The position numbers were made by a program, and so were the translations under genes. Below are positions 1,208 through 21,535 of a stretch of 64,000 nt of DNA, piece after piece. Each line of letters opens with the position of its first letter. Within the stretch, counting starts at the first letter, position 1. The notes beneath the pieces were generated by a model. The model was not told the DNA's origin and made no database searches. It saw nothing but the letters and a program-made list of their open reading frames with translations. The stretch is taken from sequence record PP968062.1; one strand, 5' to 3'.

Positions 1208-1606
1208 TTAGGTATTTACACCCCAGTTGTAGTCGTAGTAGGTTTCACAGAAGGTCTTACCTGCGGTATACTTCATGGTGCAGTTGTTGGAATCAACCAG
1301 AGTCGCTAAGTCTTCGAACGGTACAGGGTGACCACTCATCGGAGAGATGATCGTGTAACCGTTGTAGCGCAGATGATCAACCAGAGCAACCATACCAGTT
1401 TCCAAACCGACATTGTAGATGCGGTTTTCTTTCGGAGTCTCAACGATGTACTGTTCACCAGCAGGAATGTCAGTGATCAGACTACGATCGTCATCGGTAC
1501 GAGCTACATCGGCCATGGTCCGACTGATTTCCCAGCAGAACTCATTGAGTACGGGGTTGGATTCTTGCCATTCTTTCTTTTCTTGCAGACGCTGTTCGCA
1601 GGACAT
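1208..1606 (-). CDS. hypothetical protein
   Basis: Track ORF 1208..1762 trimmed to the ATG at 1606 (GAGGT SD), downstream of the promoter motif at 1636-1660. Confidence 0.7.
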   Translation of the reverse strand: MSCEQRLQEKKEWQESNPVLNEFCWEISRTMADVARTDDDRSLITDIPAGEQYIVETPKENRIYNVGLETGMVALVDHLRYNGYTIISPMSGHPVPFEDLATLVDSNNCTMKYTAGKTFCETYYDYNWGVNT

Positions 1607-1635
1607 TGTAATTACCTCGTTGTGGATGCAAATAA

Positions 1636-1660
1636 GTAATATAGATCTGAAAAAAATTTT
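1636..1660 (-). promoter_or_regulatory. putative phage early promoter (A/T tract...AGATCTATATTAC)
   Basis: Minus strand reads AAAATTTTTTTCAGATCTATATTAC. TATTAC core as in phiKZ early promoters; the motif recurs in several intergenic regions. Confidence 0.7.
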
Positions 1661-1665
1661 ATTGA

Positions 1666-1690
1666 CATAAAGGGGAGCCGAAGCTCCCCC
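1666..1690 (-). terminator. intrinsic terminator (UUCG-loop hairpin)
   Basis: GGGGAGC-TTCG-GCTCCCC followed by TTTATG on the minus strand, directly after the Nampt-like stop. Confidence 0.85.
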
Positions 1691-1697
1691 ATGTCTA

Positions 1698-3464
1698 TTA
1701 CAGAGATGCAGCAATCCGTTCCCGGATCTTAGCCATCGTGTCGTGTTTGTAGAACTCACCATTCTTGAAGAACAGTTTCAGTTCACCCGATTCGGTTTCC
1801 AAAGCATCCCAACTAAGGTCAGCTTCTTGTTCCAGAACGAACTTACCATCTTCGGTCTTCACTACATGCAGGAAACCTTTAGCCGACTTCTTGGAAGAAG
1901 CAGCTTTAGGATCTTTGTACAGCTCAACGAACTCGTCTTCGATCTGAACAGCAGTAGCTTTGACAGCCATGCCGAAAGTATCGCGAGTGTTGTACTGATA
2001 GGTGAAGCTACCGATACCAAGAACTACGTTGCTAGAAGCGAAGCCTTTACGTTCCAGGCGAGACATGATCTGCTCGGTACGGTCTACAGTGATCGAGTCA
2101 CCATAGATCAGGCCAACGTATTCGTTCAGGCACTTGAAGCCTTTACTGTTCTCAGTACCACCGAAGGAGTCCCACAGGACTTCAATTGCACCGCGTACTT
2201 CCACCTCAGGGATTTCAGTCTCAGAGAGGAAGTTAGACAGACTGACAGCGAGGTCGTTGATCTCGTAGTACTTACCACCTACGCTAACAACTTCGTAACC
2301 AGCGTACTCAATGGAACCGTATTCGGCAATGTGTTTCTCGAAATCAACACGATCAGCGAATTTAATCGGATAAGCCATGTAGCCAGTGATGACTTTAACC
2401 GGATCACCAGAGTCAGGACGAACAACAACTTTCGCCAGACCCAGCTCGTTCTTCAGACGACTTTCGATTTCTGCACGGATGCTCGGGAGAACATCAGAGA
2501 TAACACCCCAGAAGTCGAAGGAATCACAGACCAGCGAAATAATGCCTTCCGGGACTTTCTGAAGAATGATCTCCAGGATGTAGTCACGTTCAGCTTCCAA
2601 CCGCAGTTGGTCATGTAGTTCCGGAGTGATCACAGTACCTTCCTCTTGGAGGAAGTTGATCTTCATTTGCAGACGGTACAGGATGTTGGTTGTGGCGACA
2701 GCGTGTTCAGTTGCAGTAACTGATGCACCCAACAATTCAGTATCACTGTTAGCACCGTAATACATCTCAGCGTAATCGAGAGCCGGGATGGTATCGGTAC
2801 CAGCGAAGCTAGTCAGGTGAGCTGTACCAGAACGCATTGCATCTTCAGGACCACTCATACCACGGAAGCTGAAGTCGTGTGCCTGGAACTTGACGTGCTC
2901 ACGGTTATCGCAGGTGCGGTCAGCGTAGTGGTTCAGTACACGCTGATACTCAGCTGCAATAGTTGCGTTACAGATCATCTTCCAGTTGTAGGCACTGACG
3001 ATGGTTTCCAGGTAGTTCACCAGCCAGTAGTGATCATCGTCATCCAGGCTGTTGTAAACCACAAAGGTAGGTACGCCAACATCTACACGTTCGCCTTCGT
3101 CAATAGCCAGCACCGTCAGAGGCAGGTAGCCCAGAGCATGCAGCTTGTACAGACACTCGTGTTTGATAACGCCTTTACCGCACATGTTGTCGAAACGACG
3201 AGCAGCGCGTTTAACAGCGATTTCACGAGGCAGATTGAAGAAGGTACGATCCCACAGTTCTACCAGTTCGTGCCAGGTACCTTGCAGACCGAAGTTAACG
3301 ACTTTGTTGTCGTAGAACGCAGAACAAGACTTCGACCGCAGGAACTGCTTAGCAGAACGCGGGGTGAAGTTTGCATACTTACGTTCAGTACCTTTCGGAT
3401 ACAGAGCGCCATGGCCAGGTTTATAGCAGTCAGTAGCAGTTGCTGCATAGAGAGCATTAGACAT
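1698..3464 (-). CDS. nicotinamide phosphoribosyltransferase-like protein (probable Namat of NARP1)
   Basis: Nampt motifs TDCYKPGH, HDFSFRGM, GTDTIPA, ATEHAV, DSFDFW, VRPDSGDP, GLIYGDSIT, GIGSFTYQ, TRDTFGMAVKAT, KKSAKG. Start moved to 3464 (GAGGA SD). Confidence 0.9.
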   Translation of the reverse strand: MSNALYAATATDCYKPGHGALYPKGTERKYANFTPRSAKQFLRSKSCSAFYDNKVVNFGLQGTWHELVELWDRTFFNLPREIAVKRAARRFDNMCGKGVIKHECLYKLHALGYLPLTVLAIDEGERVDVGVPTFVVYNSLDDDDHYWLVNYLETIVSAYNWKMICNATIAAEYQRVLNHYADRTCDNREHVKFQAHDFSFRGMSGPEDAMRSGTAHLTSFAGTDTIPALDYAEMYYGANSDTELLGASVTATEHAVATTNILYRLQMKINFLQEEGTVITPELHDQLRLEAERDYILEIILQKVPEGIISLVCDSFDFWGVISDVLPSIRAEIESRLKNELGLAKVVVRPDSGDPVKVITGYMAYPIKFADRVDFEKHIAEYGSIEYAGYEVVSVGGKYYEINDLAVSLSNFLSETEIPEVEVRGAIEVLWDSFGGTENSKGFKCLNEYVGLIYGDSITVDRTEQIMSRLERKGFASSNVVLGIGSFTYQYNTRDTFGMAVKATAVQIEDEFVELYKDPKAASSKKSAKGFLHVVKTEDGKFVLEQEADLSWDALETESGELKLFFKNGEFYKHDTMAKIRERIAASL

Positions 3465-3480
3465 ATTTTTGATCCTCGGA

Positions 3481-4368
3481 TTAGAAAACAGAATGGGAGA
3501 AGAATTTCGGGTCACGTACACCATCATGCCGATAATCATTTACAGCGTTAGGATGATAGGTGTTAGTGGTCTGGATATAATCGTAGTATTCGTTCAGTTC
3601 GTCGAAACCCTTGGAGAAAATACCATGGGTTACAAACAGACCCAGTTGATCTACGATGCACTGCTCGTGGATAACCTTAGCAAGTTCAATGAACGTGCGG
3701 CCACCATCACAGATGTCATCGATAACCATCAACTTAGCTAGTCGAGGAACTTCATGGGCATTCAACAGCGACGTGTGGGTGATCTTACCAGTCGACAGTT
3801 CACGGTTCTTACAAGCGTACAGTACGCCAGCAGCACCGATCTCTTTCGCAATGGCTTCGGTCTTTTTACGTGCACCTTCATCAGGGGCAACCAACCACCA
3901 GTCACTCGGATTTTCCAGAAGTTGCCCTTCGACACACACCCAGCTTTTGATGATATCTGCTTGGGTAATCTCGCGGCAATTGTTGATGAGTGGCAGCGAC
4001 ACATTACTGTGAGGATCGTACAGGCATACAGACGTAGCGTCCAATGCATTGATCAAACCAGTCATCACACTAATCGACAGAGGTTCACCTTCATCGCAAA
4101 CACGATCTTGTCGTGCGTACGGCAGATAACCAATAACCAAGTGTATTTCAGGACGAATACGCTGGCGACGAATAGCGTCGAATACCAGGAACAGTTCCAT
4201 GATATCGTCACTATTACGAAGCCAAGCATTGATTATGAATCGTTCGCCTTTCTTTCTGAGATCTTTCAGAGGGATCTTGATACCGATCTCACCGCCAGGG
4301 AATTTAAAGGGTTGACAATCGTAGTGATCTGCCAAGCCGTTACCGTGAAGCTGAGTAATTCGAATCAT
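3481..4368 (-). CDS. ribose-phosphate pyrophosphokinase-like protein (probable Adps of NARP1)
   Basis: FKFPGGE, YLPYARQDR, DPHS, APDEGA, K-R loop, VIDDICDGGRTF, VTHGIFS. Lies immediately upstream of the Nampt-like gene. Confidence 0.9.
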   Translation of the reverse strand: MIRITQLHGNGLADHYDCQPFKFPGGEIGIKIPLKDLRKKGERFIINAWLRNSDDIMELFLVFDAIRRQRIRPEIHLVIGYLPYARQDRVCDEGEPLSISVMTGLINALDATSVCLYDPHSNVSLPLINNCREITQADIIKSWVCVEGQLLENPSDWWLVAPDEGARKKTEAIAKEIGAAGVLYACKNRELSTGKITHTSLLNAHEVPRLAKLMVIDDICDGGRTFIELAKVIHEQCIVDQLGLFVTHGIFSKGFDELNEYYDYIQTTNTYHPNAVNDYRHDGVRDPKFFSHSVF

Positions 4369-4385: not shown

Positions 4386-4409
4386 AAGAAGTTGGGGACC
4401 GAAGTCCCC
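4386..4409 (-). terminator. intrinsic terminator
   Basis: GGGGAC-TTCG-GTCCCC followed by a T-rich run after the rtcB stop. Confidence 0.65.
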
Positions 4410-4416
4410 GTTCGGG

Positions 4417-5670
4417 TTAGCCCTTGACGCAAACAATCTGACGCAGGGTGTGGACGATCTCAATGAGGTCATCCTGAGCAGCCATTACGTCTTCAATGTT
4501 CTTATAAGCCTTTGGAGTCTCGTCGATCACGTCAATGTCTTTCCGGCATTCTACACCGGCAGTATCACGAGCATGATCTTCAAGAGTGAAAGTCTTAGCG
4601 GCTTGGGTTCGGGACATGACACGTCCTGCTCCGTGCGAACACGAACAGAAGGACTCGCGGTTCCCTTTACCTTTCACGATGAAGCTCTTAGCGCCCATCG
4701 ATCCAGGGATAATACCGTACATGCCTTCATCTGCACGCACAGCGCCTTTACGAGTTACGGATACTTTCGCACCGAAGTGGTTCTCGAACGACACGTAGTT
4801 GTGGTGACAGTTTACAGCAGTAAGGCTAGTGTTGATAGGCCGACCCATGTAGTCAGCCACAGCCTCGATTGTTGCACGCATCATGATCGTACGGTTGAGA
4901 GCAGCGTAACGCTGTGCCCAATGTACAGCCTCGATGTAGTCGCTGTAGTACTTGGTACCTTCCGGCAGATAAGCGAGGTCCTGATCAGGCAGATTGATGT
5001 GGTAAAGCCGCATCTCCTCTTTTGCTTTCTCGATAAAGTACCGACCAATTGCGTTACCGATTCCACGAGAACCCGAATGGAGCATGATCCAAACTCGATC
5101 TTGTTCATCCAGACAGATTTCTACGAAGTGGTTACCAGTACCGAGAGTACCTGCGTGGTTGAAAGCACGGTTAGCAGCCTTACCCAGTTTCGGGTGTTTA
5201 GCCACGATGAGCTTCAGTTCCTCTTCAAGCTTCTTAACCTGAGCTTGGAGCTCCGGTTCGAGTTTCTTGTAAACGAGGTTGAAGTCACTCCATGCGCCAC
5301 GATCATTCGGTCCGCCATTGTCAGTACGACCATGAGGGATCCGAGACTCAATACGGTAACGCAGATGTTGCAAGCCACGAGTCATGTCGTTAGCTGTCAG
5401 ATCAGTCAACTGTGCTGCCATTCCACAGCCAATGTCAACCCCTACCGCAGACGGAATGATTGCACCCCGCGTAGCGATTACGGAACCGATGGTTGCACCG
5501 GTACCAAGGTGGACATCAGGCATTACAGCCAGATGCTTATAAATGAACGGGAGTCCCGCAATGTTCTTCAGCTGACGTTTTGCATCAGCTTCAACAGGGA
5601 CGCCTTTAACCCAAGCTTTAATTGGGAATTCATTTTGTTCGTTCAGCATAACGTATTTTTGAGTAGTCAT
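4417..5670 (-). CDS. rtcB: RtcB family RNA 2',3'-cyclic-phosphate/3'-phosphate ligase
   Basis: MPDVH, VGVDIGCG, GTLGTGNHFVE, LHSGSRG, NCHHN, RKGA, IPGSMG, SHGAGR, DETPKAYK, CVKG. Confidence 0.96.
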   Translation of the reverse strand: MTTQKYVMLNEQNEFPIKAWVKGVPVEADAKRQLKNIAGLPFIYKHLAVMPDVHLGTGATIGSVIATRGAIIPSAVGVDIGCGMAAQLTDLTANDMTRGLQHLRYRIESRIPHGRTDNGGPNDRGAWSDFNLVYKKLEPELQAQVKKLEEELKLIVAKHPKLGKAANRAFNHAGTLGTGNHFVEICLDEQDRVWIMLHSGSRGIGNAIGRYFIEKAKEEMRLYHINLPDQDLAYLPEGTKYYSDYIEAVHWAQRYAALNRTIMMRATIEAVADYMGRPINTSLTAVNCHHNYVSFENHFGAKVSVTRKGAVRADEGMYGIIPGSMGAKSFIVKGKGNRESFCSCSHGAGRVMSRTQAAKTFTLEDHARDTAGVECRKDIDVIDETPKAYKNIEDVMAAQDDLIEIVHTLRQIVCVKG

Positions 5671-5806: not shown

Positions 5807-6391
5807 TCATCGGTCCGATTCAACGGACATAGATAACTCTTTATGTTTTCTTCGCCTTTCGACATCGGCGAACCAAGGTCTTACACTGAGCCACATTGCA
5901 GGCCAACTAAGAATAGCAGCTATAGCCATCCATACTGCGCTGAGTAATACCCATGCATCGTTACCATCATCAACATCGCGTGGAGCTATGTCTAGTTGAT
6001 AACCGGTTCCAACGGGGACATGGTGATATGTGTAATCACCGAGCTTGGTTTCGTATACGAAGGGAACACCTTTCATTTTCCCTTCCCAACGACCCTTTAG
6101 CTCGGTATAAACACCGTTCTTGTACTTGTGAGATTCTTCCCATTTCCAGGTCAGTACAACCTGGGTCTTACGTTTGGTAACGTAGTCAGAGAAGAATGAG
6201 TTGTAGACTGCACCACCCATAAATGCTAAGCAGATTAGGTAGAGTACCACACAACGCAGTTTAACCCACTTGGAGATTGGTACATACGGCTCTTGTTTCA
6301 TGGTTATCGTACAGCCGGTTGCGTTTGCATAACCCAAGGGATTCCTTGTGGCCATTGCATATATTGCAGCTGCCTCCGGAGTTATATTCAT
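5807..6391 (-). CDS. hypothetical membrane protein
   Basis: Two hydrophobic stretches (CVVLYLICLAFMGGAVY; AWVLLSAVWMAIAAILSW). Confidence 0.7.
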   Translation of the reverse strand: MNITPEAAAIYAMATRNPLGYANATGCTITMKQEPYVPISKWVKLRCVVLYLICLAFMGGAVYNSFFSDYVTKRKTQVVLTWKWEESHKYKNGVYTELKGRWEGKMKGVPFVYETKLGDYTYHHVPVGTGYQLDIAPRDVDDGNDAWVLLSAVWMAIAAILSWPAMWLSVRPWFADVERRRKHKELSMSVESDR

Positions 6392-7215
6392 TTAGGATTC
6401 CCATGGATAAGCTGGAACGTGTCGAACTTGTATTGATCAACGAAGTACCATGCGAGTTCACTCAGCTTAAAGATATCCGGACGTTCGTATTCACCGAAGT
6501 CGGGTTTCTCTTTAGCCAAATGGAAATCGATGAAACGGTCCAATACAGGACAACGATCGATCAAGTCTTGTTCAGTGGAACCTACCTTACAGTTGACCAG
6601 TTCCTGAATACGTTTGTACAGGGTAGGATCAGACAGAATCGGTAGGAGTTCATGGAATACCATCGGTGGATGTTCACGACTAGTCTCAACCCACAATGCT
6701 GCTAACAGTGGACGGAGAGCATAGAAGTATTTCTTCATGCGGACTTTCTCATCCGACAGCCAACGCATCTTGGTTTGCTTGGCCATGGAGATATAGTGCA
6801 TGAAGCTCGATTCGGGAATGAAGTGCTTGATAGCGTAATCACGAATCAGTTTGTAATCCCACTCGATCTTACGGTAAACGATCGGGGAGTTCAACCATTC
6901 CAACAGAGTCGGGTTAGACTTGTAAGCCAGTTGAAGTGTCTTGGTGATACTCCAACCAGCCAGATCGAGTTCCTTGGAAACCATCTCTTCGATGGTGTCA
7001 CGACCTTCGTTATCAACCCGGACATAATGGCTCGGATGGTTAACGTAGATGAAGCGAACATCGTAGTCGCTATTAGTAGAAGCGAAACCCCAACCACGAC
7101 TACCGGACTCACAGGCGTAAATGATCTTTACACCATACTTCTGTTCGATACGAGTTAACTCGGCGTCTATAACTGCACGCATCTCATCACTAACAGGGTG
7201 ACGTGGATCCATCAT
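6388..7215 (-). CDS. Pol-beta-like nucleotidyltransferase, RlaP family
   Basis: IIYACESGSRGWGFASTNSDYDVRFIY, DLAGWSITK, SNPTLLEWLNSPIVY, KKYFYALRPLLA. Confidence 0.88.
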   Translation of the reverse strand: MMDPRHPVSDEMRAVIDAELTRIEQKYGVKIIYACESGSRGWGFASTNSDYDVRFIYVNHPSHYVRVDNEGRDTIEEMVSKELDLAGWSITKTLQLAYKSNPTLLEWLNSPIVYRKIEWDYKLIRDYAIKHFIPESSFMHYISMAKQTKMRWLSDEKVRMKKYFYALRPLLAALWVETSREHPPMVFHELLPILSDPTLYKRIQELVNCKVGSTEQDLIDRCPVLDRFIDFHLAKEKPDFGEYERPDIFKLSELAWYFVDQYKFDTFQLIHGNPK

Positions 7216-11351: not shown

Positions 11352-12101
11352 TTATTCCTCAAGACGGAGTTTCCAGAACCCGCCTTCCTCTTTCCACGTT
11401 TCACGAATAGCGTTGTCAGTACGTTGGCCGTCCTTAAACAGCTTCTCTACATTGGACGGGTGAGTATAGTTGTACAACGCAATTGCGAATTGAGCTACGG
11501 CTACACGAGCTGGAATAACACCAGTACCCGTACCCATCAGACAGCCGAGTACACGGAAGGAGTTTTTCTTACCGTACCATTCACAGCCAGCAATGCCGTC
11601 CAGGGCTGCCTTAGAGGCCAGATAAGGAACATCTGAACCTTTGGGTAACCTACGAGGAACACGCATTGTAGGAGTGTACAAGAGCGTTGCAGTGATGCCA
11701 TTAAGCTTAGTGAACTGTACGCATGCACAAACACCTACGTTTAGTTCACCGTTGTGGAAACGATTGATATCGTGTACCACGTTCTTCTGCATGTTTACAA
11801 AACGAGCAGCCAGTGCTCCGTCATAACCACCGGTCATATGCCCGTACGAGTTACCCGCAGTCATGTAGTAGTCGAAGTCATCCGCGATGTCTTCAAGATC
11901 ATCAAGGGAACCATGGAATACTTTTAGATCATGTCCAAGGTCCTTGACGAAATCGGAAATGGCGATGAGCTCTTGGAACTCTTCATAGCTGGGGGTGCAA
12001 AATACGAACTCCAATGGTTTTCGTCCGACATCCGACAAACTAAGAGTAATGCCGTCGGCAATCTCTTTGTGGATACGGGACATTACGAGTGGAGATGTCA
12101 T
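11352..12101 (-). CDS. macrodomain (ADP-ribose binding/hydrolase) protein
   Basis: MTAGNSYGHMTGGYDGAL matches the macrodomain NAAN...GGGV signature; LYTPTMRVP and GTGTG loop also present. Confidence 0.8.
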   Translation of the reverse strand: MTSPLVMSRIHKEIADGITLSLSDVGRKPLEFVFCTPSYEEFQELIAISDFVKDLGHDLKVFHGSLDDLEDIADDFDYYMTAGNSYGHMTGGYDGALAARFVNMQKNVVHDINRFHNGELNVGVCACVQFTKLNGITATLLYTPTMRVPRRLPKGSDVPYLASKAALDGIAGCEWYGKKNSFRVLGCLMGTGTGVIPARVAVAQFAIALYNYTHPSNVEKLFKDGQRTDNAIRETWKEEGGFWKLRLEE

Positions 12102-12185: not shown

Positions 12186-12434
12186 TTACAGTGAAACACA
12201 CGACATTTCGCGACGAATGTTTTTACTACTGAACTTGTATTCTAGGACTACGCCAGATTGGGTGCGAGTAACTTTAACCTCGGTTCCGTTTGCCGCAGCC
12301 GTATCTTGGATAGCACCTACTGCTTTCCAGCAGGAATCGATGCTTTCCATTTTGGTAGCGGTTTCAGAAGCGCCTCCAGCGTAGACACCGGAGACGATAG
12401 TGCTGCTGAGTAGAAGTGCACCTGCAAGACTCAT
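12186..12434 (-). CDS. small exported/membrane hypothetical protein
   Basis: Hydrophobic signal-like N-terminus; start overlaps the sspB-like stop. Confidence 0.55.
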   Translation of the reverse strand: MSLAGALLLSSTIVSGVYAGGASETATKMESIDSCWKAVGAIQDTAAANGTEVKVTRTQSGVVLEYKFSSKNIRREMSCVSL

Positions 12435-13231
12435 TATTTCTTACCTCCTTTAATTACGGTGAGCTTCGGCTTACCTTTATAACGAGATGGGCCAACATTG
12501 ATCGGCGTACCCGGAAGATCGCCAAAGTCGAGAAGGGGTTTATCAACAACCTTCAACTCGGGAGCCTTCTTAGTCGGACTAACTTCCACGCCAGGTTGGT
12601 TAGCAATGAAATCTTCAGCTTCTTCCAGCTCTTTTAGTTTCCGAGTATTTGAACGTTCGGAAACATAAGACAAGAACTGCGAGAACATATCGTCGTCATT
12701 GCTAACCATGTGCTGTACATGTTCGAGCGCTTTCTCTACAGGAACGTCAGTAATTCCCTTCTCTGCCAACCAAGCCATTACATCAACGATATCGATACTT
12801 ACAGTGCCAGGGGCACCATTGGCAATATCACGGAAGGGATGGACATACGTCGGATTCTCCGCATCAAACAGAATCCGATCGACATTAGGGAACGGAGAGA
12901 ATACGCTTGCATTCTCAGAGATCTGTACATTAACACCAATGAAAGAATGCCACGGTAGATGCAGACGGGTAGGCATACCCGAGAAAGCAATCTCACCATA
13001 GAAGCAATCGCCCGAATAATCAATGTGACGGCAAGCATTTACCGACAGATTGAGAACGATGGTACCATTAGTGGCGTTGAAATCTTTCGAACGCATCATG
13101 ATTTTACGGAGCGGTTCAGCCAGATAGCCAACATCGATAACACAATCGAAACGATACATGTTGTTATCGGCGTTCCAGCTGTAATACGCTTCGATCAGTT
13201 TTTGGTTCAGAGCGGAAGTAAGCTTGAGCAT
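12434..13231 (-). CDS. sspB: SspB-like ClpXP adaptor protein
   Basis: LIEAYYSWNADN...NGTIVLNLSVNACRHI...EIAFSGMPTRLHLPW parallels the SspB core. C-terminus KPKLTVIKGGKK resembles the ClpX-binding tail (PALRVVK). Confidence 0.75.
   Translation of the reverse strand: MLKLTSALNQKLIEAYYSWNADNNMYRFDCVIDVGYLAEPLRKIMMRSKDFNATNGTIVLNLSVNACRHIDYSGDCFYGEIAFSGMPTRLHLPWHSFIGVNVQISENASVFSPFPNVDRILFDAENPTYVHPFRDIANGAPGTVSIDIVDVMAWLAEKGITDVPVEKALEHVQHMVSNDDDMFSQFLSYVSERSNTRKLKELEEAEDFIANQPGVEVSPTKKAPELKVVDKPLLDFGDLPGTPINVGPSRYKGKPKLTVIKGGKK

Positions 13232-18945: not shown

Positions 18946-21535
<2,590 letters not shown>

Follow-up and report, generated by a model that had tools for sequence, protein, structure and literature searches.

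Judged by sequence, two adjacent genes of Pseudomonas phage HPP-Temi are very probably orthologues of the genes of NAD+ reconstitution pathway 1 (NARP1), in which an ADP-ribose pyrophosphokinase (Adps) is paired with a nicotinamide ADP-ribose transferase (Namat). NARP1 is defined operationally by an Adps-clade gene lying near a Namat-clade gene in a phage genome (Osterman et al.), and here the two are directly adjacent, with a spacer of 16 nt between them. A sequence-only reading of the region had favored NARP1 over a Prs plus Nampt combination or NARP2, and that assignment is borne out by the clade in which each protein falls, the selectivity-clamp helix (SCH) motif of Namat, the catalytic lysine and PP loop of Adps, the operon linkage and the lack of a detectable Nmnat gene. 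HPP-Temi, a jumbo phage that forms a nucleus, belongs to the genus Pawinskivirus, and its 302,719-bp (302.7 kb) genome encodes a nuclear shell protein, the tubulin PhuZ and split RNA polymerase subunits. The analysis centered on a stretch of 64,000 nucleotides from its record PP968062.1, referred to here as the window. The earlier description of the phage as phiKZ-like is apt in the broad sense of the shell protein, PhuZ and the split polymerase subunits, but the genus is Pawinskivirus and not Phikzvirus.

The pair had been described as adjacent, co-oriented PRPP-synthetase-like and Nampt-like genes, and two minus-strand ORFs do span positions 1698-4368 of the window exactly. The first, adps (3481-4368), encodes a Prs-like protein of 295 aa that is named ribose-phosphate pyrophosphokinase in GenBank and matches Pfam Pribosyltran_N (7e-11) and NCBIfam TIGR01251 (4.5e-30). 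The second, namat (1698-3464), encodes a Nampt-like protein of 588 aa that is named nicotinamide phosphoribosyl transferase in GenBank and matches Pfam NAPRTase (7e-36) and NCBIfam NF006629 (3.5e-132). GenBank places the start of namat at 3539, which gives the longest ORF (1698-3539, 613 aa) from an ATG that falls within adps. The start is most likely the ATG at 3464 (MSNALY...), giving 588 aa; this codon lies 16 nt past the adps stop, is preceded 9 nt upstream by a GAGGA Shine-Dalgarno sequence, and is also the start used in the records of phages PA1C, phiHQ and BRkr and in the tables of Osterman et al. The spacer that holds the ribosome-binding site (3465-3480, minus strand) is identical across PA1C, phiHQ and BRkr. 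Both reading frames are undisrupted and have dN/dS values of 0.05-0.08 relative to three sister phages; adps and namat are intact, are under strong purifying selection and are more than chance ORFs.

Phylogeny had been proposed as a check on the assignment, and it placed the two proteins on the Adps and Namat sides, respectively, of branches with a support value of 100. For Adps, a quick tree method was applied to 28 rows, comprising the HPP-Temi protein, 24 relatives and the verified Adps of Bas63, SPbetaL1 and ICP1, which were split by such a branch from 40 diverse cellular Prs, all of the class I type. The protein reaches none of the curated Prs cut-offs in NCBIfam, scoring 104.6 against TIGR01251 (cut-off 113) and 40-90 against the equivalog Prs models (cut-offs 296-536). 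BLASTP gave 137 bits to ICP1 Adps and 136 bits to Bas63 Adps versus 61 bits to E. coli Prs. With 295 aa versus 315 aa for E. coli Prs, the protein falls within the range used to recognize a compact Adps (~270-295 aa, without the regulatory C-terminal helices of Prs), and in an alignment all four Adps are gapped where Prs has its N-terminal helix and end in a short C-terminus that cannot be aligned. The Adps of Vibrio phage ICP1 (35.8% identity), for which structures and kinetics have been reported, is likewise PRPS-like and without the C-terminal regulatory helices (Liu et al. 2026).

Lys187 of the HPP-Temi protein corresponds to the catalytic beta-hairpin lysine of Adps (K185 in ICP1 and K162 in SPbetaL1) and is invariant in 61 relatives; replacing that lysine with alanine in the ICP1 or SPbetaL1 enzyme abolished or strongly reduced activity. 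The acceptor residues R86, H120, D163, D217, D218 and D221 are all kept relative to ICP1 (R87, H121, D161, D212, D213 and D216), and Bas63 has the very same PP loop, DDICDGGRTF. Since the acceptor residues and PP loop are mostly common to Prs, they indicate an active enzyme and not its specificity. Of the two aromatic contacts to the ADPR adenine in ICP1, Phe18 is conserved as Phe23 here, but Prs has a phenylalanine there too; Phe92, replaced by Cys91 here, by methionine in Bas63 and by a gap in SPbetaL1, is a point against the assignment. HPP-Temi also differs from ICP1 in the PP loop, which reads GGRT rather than GAAS. A sequence search of one copy of the PDB gave no match to a solved Adps.

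In the Namat/Nampt tree, a branch with a support value of 100 separates the side that includes the HPP-Temi protein from 32 Nampt of the phage NARP2 type and of bacteria. All rows on the Namat side have the motif GS[FY]TYQxN[TS]RD, whereas all Nampt rows have GG[GAM][LM][LG]Q..[DNT]RD, mostly beginning GG[GA]LLQ. The HPP-Temi SCH motif, GSFTYQYNTRD (residues 485-495), is the same as that of the crystallized SPbetaL1 Namat, whose F392 and Y396 stack on the adenine, and it supplies the corresponding adenine-clamp residues F487 and Y491. The catalytic core is kept as well (F198, D224, H254 and R349, corresponding to F189, D215, the catalytic histidine and R306 of SPbetaL1). A sequence search of the PDB matched SPbetaL1 Namat (9w5w and 9w5x) with an E value of 3e-101 and human Nampt with 1e-46. 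An AlphaFold2 model of the protein (pLDDT 92.6) has 9w5x and 9w5w as its Foldseek ranks 1-7 (E 7e-50), and the predicted fold is closest to Namat by a small margin, with TM scores by target length of 0.92-0.93 versus 0.90-0.91 for Nampt. Homologues of ~900 aa were considered as possible Adps-Namat fusions and rejected, their additional length being an insert of ~307 aa after RPD, ahead of the following S, with no Adps domain.

If the two proteins act as their relatives do, a host NADase defense would cleave NAD+ to ADP-ribose and nicotinamide, and Adps would transfer the beta,gamma-pyrophosphate of ATP to the terminal ribose of ADP-ribose to form ADPR-PP, with Lys187 as the key catalytic residue. 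Namat would then replace the pyrophosphate of ADPR-PP with nicotinamide, yielding NAD+ directly, with neither an NMN intermediate nor an adenylyltransferase. Phe487 and Tyr491 would form part of an adenine clamp that favors ADPR-PP over PRPP. The two genes, with the 16-nt spacer between them and a hairpin at their end, would act as one unit. We infer both reactions and the counter-defense role in HPP-Temi by analogy, the NARP1 reactions having been demonstrated only for the homologues of SPbetaL1, ICP1, DyoEdafos and P. foliorum. We located no biochemical or genetic test of the pair in the literature for HPP-Temi or any nucleus-forming jumbo phage, and the genome paper of HPP-Temi is silent on adps and namat.

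The hairpin that follows namat (GGGGGAGC-UUCG-GCUCCCC at 1690-1673, minus strand) lies 9 nt past the stop codon, is GC-rich with a UUCG loop, and gives the pair a terminator-like 3' end. Its predicted stability is -21.7 kcal/mol (z = -5.3 versus shuffled sequences), and it is also present in PA1C, phiHQ and BRkr. The pair had been credited with its own terminator; a conserved, stable hairpin is indeed there, but its U-tract is imperfect, and the element is better regarded as a putative terminator for the phage's own RNA polymerases. A smaller hairpin (GGGGAC-UUCG-GUCCCC at 4394-4409, minus strand) lies in the 48 nt that separate rtcB from adps. This hairpin is kept in the same three phages, has a stability of -15.9 kcal/mol with a weak z of -1.8, and may partly terminate transcription or serve in RNA processing or stability. 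No recognizable promoter was found in the 48-nt gap, and a sigma-70 promoter scan gave fewer matches (8) than shuffled sequences (11.4), a result that says nothing about a phage with RNA polymerases of its own. The motif TATATTAC, a phiKZ early-promoter motif, occurs at 1636-1643 just downstream of the first hairpin; it was set aside as a candidate promoter, with four copies in 64 kb versus 1.55 expected and that count equaled in 6 of 100 shuffles. The public runs that contain this sequence are DNA runs or metagenomes only.

The absence of an Nmnat gene, which had been noted for the window, holds there and extends to the whole genome. Four queries of the NadD/NadR type, as distinct from the NadM type of KVP40 NatV, were run against the 302,719 bp by tblastn and phmmer and recovered no homologue of Nmnat, NadR or NadD; the HxGH motif did not turn up in a scan either, and the annotation agrees. 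An Nmnat partner elsewhere in the genome had been raised as something that could account for the genes by a NARP2-type route, and the genome-wide search found no such gene. NARP2, which combines a KVP40-type Nampt with Nmnat, likewise makes NAD+ from nicotinamide and uses a homologous phosphoribosyltransferase fold, but its Nampt belongs to the other clade, carries GG[GA]LLQ where Namat has the clamp aromatics, and requires the Nmnat that was not found in HPP-Temi. NARP3 consists of a NadR-like bifunctional enzyme and the transporter PnuC, and no NadR homologue was found in this genome, whereas ICP1 has a NadR-like gene.

Extended forms of NARP1 were considered as well. NARP1-AP, in which a Macro-domain phosphatase (Adpp) accompanies Adps and Namat, and the RyDEP-extended form have the core pair in common with HPP-Temi, but a Macro or RyR gene was undetected beside the HPP-Temi pair, the neighboring proteins of 132, 194, 135 and 255 aa giving no Pfam match at E <= 5. 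Judged by these searches, HPP-Temi carries NARP1 in its plain form of two genes. Atlas look-alikes of the flanking genes were uninformative. A faint macro-domain (ADP-ribose-binding) signal was seen in a conserved chimallivirus protein encoded at 11352-12101, 7 kb upstream of the pair. Its identification as a macro-domain protein was not supported by Pfam or PDB sequence searches; a pattern scan of viral contigs gave no relatives of this ORF, and its single-sequence AlphaFold model (pLDDT 32.7) was useless. The pair had also been conjectured to complement a Tad1-like gene as a second layer against Thoeris-type systems. Among the 38 hypothetical ORFs of the window, searches with Pfam and NCBIfam, libraries that possibly hold no Tad1 model, gave no Tad-type family, a result that does not count as evidence against such a gene.

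The closest known counterparts are the orthologues in PA1C and PS119XW, which are listed with an Adps homologue, "Namat within 10 genes: Yes" and an "Adps-associated" Namat (Osterman et al. 2024, Supplementary Tables 1 and 2). Across the 2,671 bp of the pair, HPP-Temi is 97.9% identical in DNA to PA1C and 89.0% to PS119XW; Adps of PA1C, an entry in Table S1, is 99% identical, and the gene order, spacer and both hairpins of PA1C are the same as in HPP-Temi. What sets HPP-Temi apart is a few substitutions, a later deposition that left it outside those tables, and GenBank names that still read Prs and Nampt. Since this lineage was already tabulated, the finding is nothing conceptually new for the field. 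The NARP1 of Escherichia phage JohannRWettstein (Bas63, genes 79-80), which counters SIR2-HerA in vivo, also has Adps first and Namat second; Bas63 is a Felixounavirus with a different host, and both of its proteins are ~37% identical to those of HPP-Temi.

One possibility is that the jumbo-phage NARP1 is no plain copy, and that it uses another or broader ADPR-derived substrate or works as a split three-component system with an unlinked Adpp-like partner, in adaptation to a phage that encloses its DNA in a protein nucleus. Namat of HPP-Temi has features compatible with such a variant. Its variable clamp loop (SCL), which departs from the published rule and in this counts against the NARP1 assignment, is longer than in all three references and exceeds that of SPbetaL1 by 9 residues; the third residue, Lys39, a lysine also in Bas63 and ICP1, fits the Arg/Lys/Tyr part of the rule, but the next is the non-aromatic Gln40, followed by F41, where an aromatic residue (Trp or Tyr) is said to stack on the adenine. 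Relative to SPbetaL1 Namat, which has 491 aa, demonstrated activity in vitro (as has its Adps) and an Arg40 that stacks, the HPP-Temi protein contains two additional elements predicted with good confidence, a helical hairpin at ~259-296 and an alpha/beta subdomain at ~362-419. Namat of Bas63 is also of this long type (593 aa), being extended by inserts at both of these sites and having lysine third in the SCL, but it has Trp after that lysine where HPP-Temi has Gln. The longer loop lacking the expected stacking aromatic and the two subdomains that the one solved Namat does not have, together with the conserved clustering with three RNA-repair genes and the faint macro signal at 11352-12101, are what prompt this reading, which we consider improbable.

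An alternative explanation is classical salvage, in which the Prs-like protein makes PRPP, the Nampt-like protein makes NMN and a host adenylyltransferase completes NAD+, much as in NARP2 with a host partner. The GenBank names and the top Pfam and NCBIfam matches agree with this scheme, and Namat enzymes keep the ability to form NMN from PRPP in vitro. Overall similarity alone is indecisive here, since NadV of Haemophilus ducreyi (9ke8 and 9keo), the nearest solved relative that is not a Namat (E 3e-93 to the window protein; TM 0.91-0.92), is a working, NMN-producing Nampt. The clamp aromatics of the HPP-Temi protein, however, occur in none of the 32 sampled Nampt and are missing from H. ducreyi NadV, whose motif is GAQTYQRNTRD, and the Prs-like partner lies in the Adps clade and under every curated Prs cut-off. 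The characterized homologues point the same way: SPbetaL1 Adps gave no measurable PRPP-synthetase product but formed ADPR-PP from ADP-ribose and ATP, SPbetaL1 Namat offered both substrates made NAD+ only, and the Bas63 NARP1 functions in E. coli mutated in both pncC and nadR. Salvage through NMN is quite unlikely.

We give a similarly small chance to a housekeeping function, in which the pair supplies NAD+ to NAD-consuming enzymes of the phage whether or not a defense is triggered. HPP-Temi does encode an NAD-dependent DNA ligase (window positions 18946-20994), and NARP2 increases NAD+ also when there is no defense system. NARP1, on the other hand, requires free ADP-ribose, and in Bas63 infection ADPR-PP appeared only with an NADase defense. 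LigA-type ligases release NMN and AMP. The substrates of NARP1 are ADP-ribose and nicotinamide, and NARP1 would thus not recycle the products of the ligase. Housekeeping and counter-defense roles are compatible and do not exclude each other. A role in RNA repair, with the pair recycling nicotinamide and ADP-ribose derivatives from a Tpt1-type 2'-phosphotransferase in concert with the flanking RNA ligases, is the least credible of these readings: RtcB (4417-5670), an RlaP nucleotidyltransferase (6388-7215) and an ATP-dependent RNA ligase (1-1128) flank the pair in an order that recurs in PA1C, phiHQ and BRkr, but no KptA/Tpt1 homologue was found in the genome, phage D6 retains Adps-Namat with RtcB not adjacent, and across phages the pair is found in numerous unrelated settings.

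NARP1 thus stays the preferred reading, and with it, on the strength of the protein sequences, the functional label of the two genes would be corrected from nucleotide salvage to a counter-defense module. The insert subdomains and atypical clamp loop are the distinctive points of the long type of Namat that HPP-Temi carries. The correction concerns a candidate therapeutic phage of Pseudomonas aeruginosa. The phage nucleus shields the DNA from nucleases and would leave the cytoplasmic NAD+ pool unprotected. If the pair is NARP1, then by analogy with the characterized systems HPP-Temi and its genus should resist abortive-infection systems that deplete NAD+, including type I Thoeris, DSR, SIR2-HerA and SEFIR.

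Two minus-strand genes of Pseudomonas phage HPP-Temi at 1698-4368 are, judging from sequence, very probably a copy of NARP1, the phage pathway in which Adps and Namat rebuild NAD+, and their enzymatic function is predicted from homologues at 30-37% identity. The 2,671-bp span corresponds to 63698-66368 of the HPP-Temi genome (PP968062.1; 302,719 bp; genus Pawinskivirus; 100% identity), and the window to 62001-126000. HPP-Temi is a nucleus-forming jumbo phage, with genes for PhuZ tubulin, a nuclear shell protein and several split beta subunits of RNA polymerase; the term phiKZ-like in the sequence-only reading is right in a broad sense. The adjacent, co-oriented genes described in that reading are indeed two minus-strand ORFs, assigned to families by Pfam and NCBIfam: adps (4368..3481, 295 aa; PRPP-synthetase-like) and namat (3539..1698, 613 aa as the longest ORF; Nampt-like). 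The true start of namat is almost certainly the ATG at 3464, giving a protein of 588 aa; this ATG lies 16 nt past the adps stop and 9 nt after a GAGGA site, and it is also used in sister-phage records and the Osterman tables.

Both genes are uninterrupted in all four phages compared (dN/dS 0.05-0.08). A hairpin (GGGGGAGC-UUCG-GCUCCCC; -21.7 kcal/mol, z -5.3) located 9 nt past the namat stop is kept in the sister phages PA1C, phiHQ (L101) and BRkr, and a weaker hairpin lies in the 48-nt gap from the upstream rtcB to adps. GenBank places a 184-aa CDS (1208-1762, minus strand) after namat that shares sequence with both the hairpin and the 3' end of namat; the records of sister phages, together with an ATG at 1606 that has a GAGG site, point instead to a 132-aa protein at 1208-1606, for which no family was found. 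Synonymous divergence between HPP-Temi and phiHQ is 0.13 for adps and 0.60 for namat, and this inequality points to a recombination breakpoint located either between adps and namat or inside one of them.

An unlikely alternative is that the genes encode an ordinary PRPP synthetase (Prs) and an NMN-forming Nampt. [quoted passage not shown] The Nampt-like protein of the pair is a Namat: it has the core residues F198, D224, H254 and R349, and its clamp helix, GSFTYQYNTRD (F487, Y491), equals the motif of the phage SPbetaL1 enzyme in every letter. Among PDB sequences it is closest to 9w5w and 9w5x, the crystals of SPbetaL1 Namat (E 3e-101, vs 1e-46 for human Nampt), which are also the best match of its AlphaFold2 model (pLDDT 92.6; TM 0.93 by target length). 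Similarity alone is insufficient, since the NMN-forming Nampt NadV of H. ducreyi matches at E 3e-93 yet lacks the clamp aromatics, and thus the clamp motif bears the weight of the assignment.

Phylogeny, proposed as a check in the sequence-only reading, supports that reading for both proteins. Among 57 Namat and Nampt sequences, a branch with 100% SH-aLRT places the window protein on the Namat side and separates 32 phage NARP2-type and bacterial Nampt, all with GG[GAM][LM][LG]Q (mostly GG[GA]LLQ) instead of the aromatic motif. In the second tree, a 100% branch divides 40 diverse cellular Prs from a group made up of the Prs-like protein, the three verified Adps (Bas63, SPbetaL1 and ICP1) and further relatives. 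Both trees were built by a quick method, with a class I Prs outgroup.

Sequence comparison likewise identifies the Prs-like protein as an Adps. It misses all curated Prs cut-offs (TIGR01251, 104.6 vs 113; equivalogs by far more), and its BLASTP scores are 137 bits to ICP1 Adps, 136 to Bas63 Adps, 75 to SPbetaL1 Adps and 61 to E. coli Prs. K185 on the catalytic hairpin of ICP1 Adps is essential (Liu et al., PMC13586617), and substitution of K162 in SPbetaL1 Adps blocks efficient NAD+ formation (Osterman et al.); the aligned K187 is invariant among 61 relatives. The acceptor residues and the PP loop are kept, the latter equal to that of Bas63, and all four Adps compared have lost the N-terminal Prs helix and have a short C-terminus. 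ICP1 F92 is replaced by Cys91 and is not kept in Bas63 either. In the 547-position PHROG profile phrog_12872, Adps matches the first half and Namat the second, which points to Adps-Namat fusions in some phages.

NARP2 (Nampt and Nmnat) and NARP3 (a NadR-like enzyme and PnuC) do not fit, since no Nmnat or NadR was found in the genome with NadD- and NadR-type queries. The earlier statement that the window lacks an NMN adenylyltransferase extends to all 302,719 bp, reassembled from overlapping pieces that agreed at every overlap: four queries (NadD and NadR of E. coli, and the NadR-like proteins from ICP1 and from a KVP40-like phage) gave a best tblastn E of 0.22 and nothing with phmmer, no ORF contains the HxGH nucleotidyltransferase motif, and nothing Nmnat-like is annotated. 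Clade placement, the clamp motif, K187 and the missing Nmnat all favor NARP1 over Prs plus Nampt or NARP2, as the sequence-only reading had proposed. ICP1, another NARP1 phage, additionally has a gene for a NadR-like protein (locus L097 1492-2532), and HPP-Temi is itself an NAD+ consumer through an annotated NAD-dependent DNA ligase (18946-20994, minus strand).

The window Namat belongs to the long type, as does Bas63 Namat (593 aa). Compared with the solved SPbetaL1 enzyme, it is predicted to have two inserts, a helical hairpin spanning roughly residues 259-296 and an alpha/beta subdomain spanning roughly 362-419, each modelled with good confidence, and its SCL has 9 more residues. The third SCL position is Lys (Lys39), which Bas63 and ICP1 share; Gln40 follows, where an adenine-stacking Trp or Tyr has been reported. 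Many close relatives (P0412-P0508) have His or Cys at SCH position 7 (GSYTYQHNTRD, GSYTYQCNTRD), and the published rule of an aromatic there is therefore not universal in the Adps-associated clade. Among metagenomic Namat homologues (P0399, P0450, P0481), those of about 900 aa have a ~307-aa insert, typical of an intein, right after the catalytic RPD|SG (residue 351 of the window Namat), and homologues of about 650 aa carry a longer insert where the window Namat has its second one.

RNA-repair genes surround the pair in an order shared within the genus (PA1C, phiHQ, BRkr) but not by phage D6: an RtcB ligase (4417-5670; Pfam 3e-130), an RlaP Pol-beta-type nucleotidyltransferase (6388-7215; 4e-88) and an ATP-dependent RNA ligase (1-1128) that is truncated at the window start and carries a PHA02142 OB-fold, all on the minus strand. 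Since phage D6 retains the pair with no adjoining RtcB and the HPP-Temi genome has no Tpt1, the neighbourhood is read as an assortment of genes for counter-defence and repair rather than a single pathway. Neither known NARP1 accessory, the Macro-domain phosphatase Adpp or the RyR-domain glycosidase RyDEP, was detected among the flanking genes. A 249-aa hypothetical protein 7 kb upstream (11352-12101, minus strand) has a faint full-length match to the NCBIfam macro-domain 'ADP-ribose-binding protein' NF001666 (E 0.0015, 18 bits), with no Pfam or PDB sequence support and a single-sequence model of pLDDT 33; it is kept in chimalliviruses (PhiPA3 gp271, Noxifer, RTH11, Klebsiella jumbo phages), often labelled 'tail protein'. 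A 265-aa hypothetical protein (12434-13231, minus strand) resembles the ClpXP specificity-enhancing factor SspB at its N-terminus (NCBIfam 4e-5; Pfam SspB 0.006). The 38 hypothetical ORFs of the window include one match each to a DSPc dual-specificity phosphatase (9e-6), the PhiKZ_gp244 capsid decoration protein (1e-44) and an AAA ATPase.

NARP1 was discovered in Bas63 and SPbetaL1 (Osterman et al. 2024). Supplementary Table 1 of that study lists a PA1C protein, to which the window Adps is 99% identical, as a Prs/Adps homologue with 'Namat within 10 genes: Yes', and its Table 2 gives PA1C and PS119XW proteins as 'Adps-associated'. A later count found 859 NARP1 loci in 20,185 phage genomes; the current phage collection contains 1,562 records that match the Adps and 2,037 that match the Namat or Nampt. 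The HPP-Temi genome paper makes no mention of adps or namat, and the GenBank names of the pair are unchanged and misleading. This is a known system, correctly called, in a lineage already catalogued for NARP1, and its assignment in HPP-Temi, while unsurprising, is of use for annotation.
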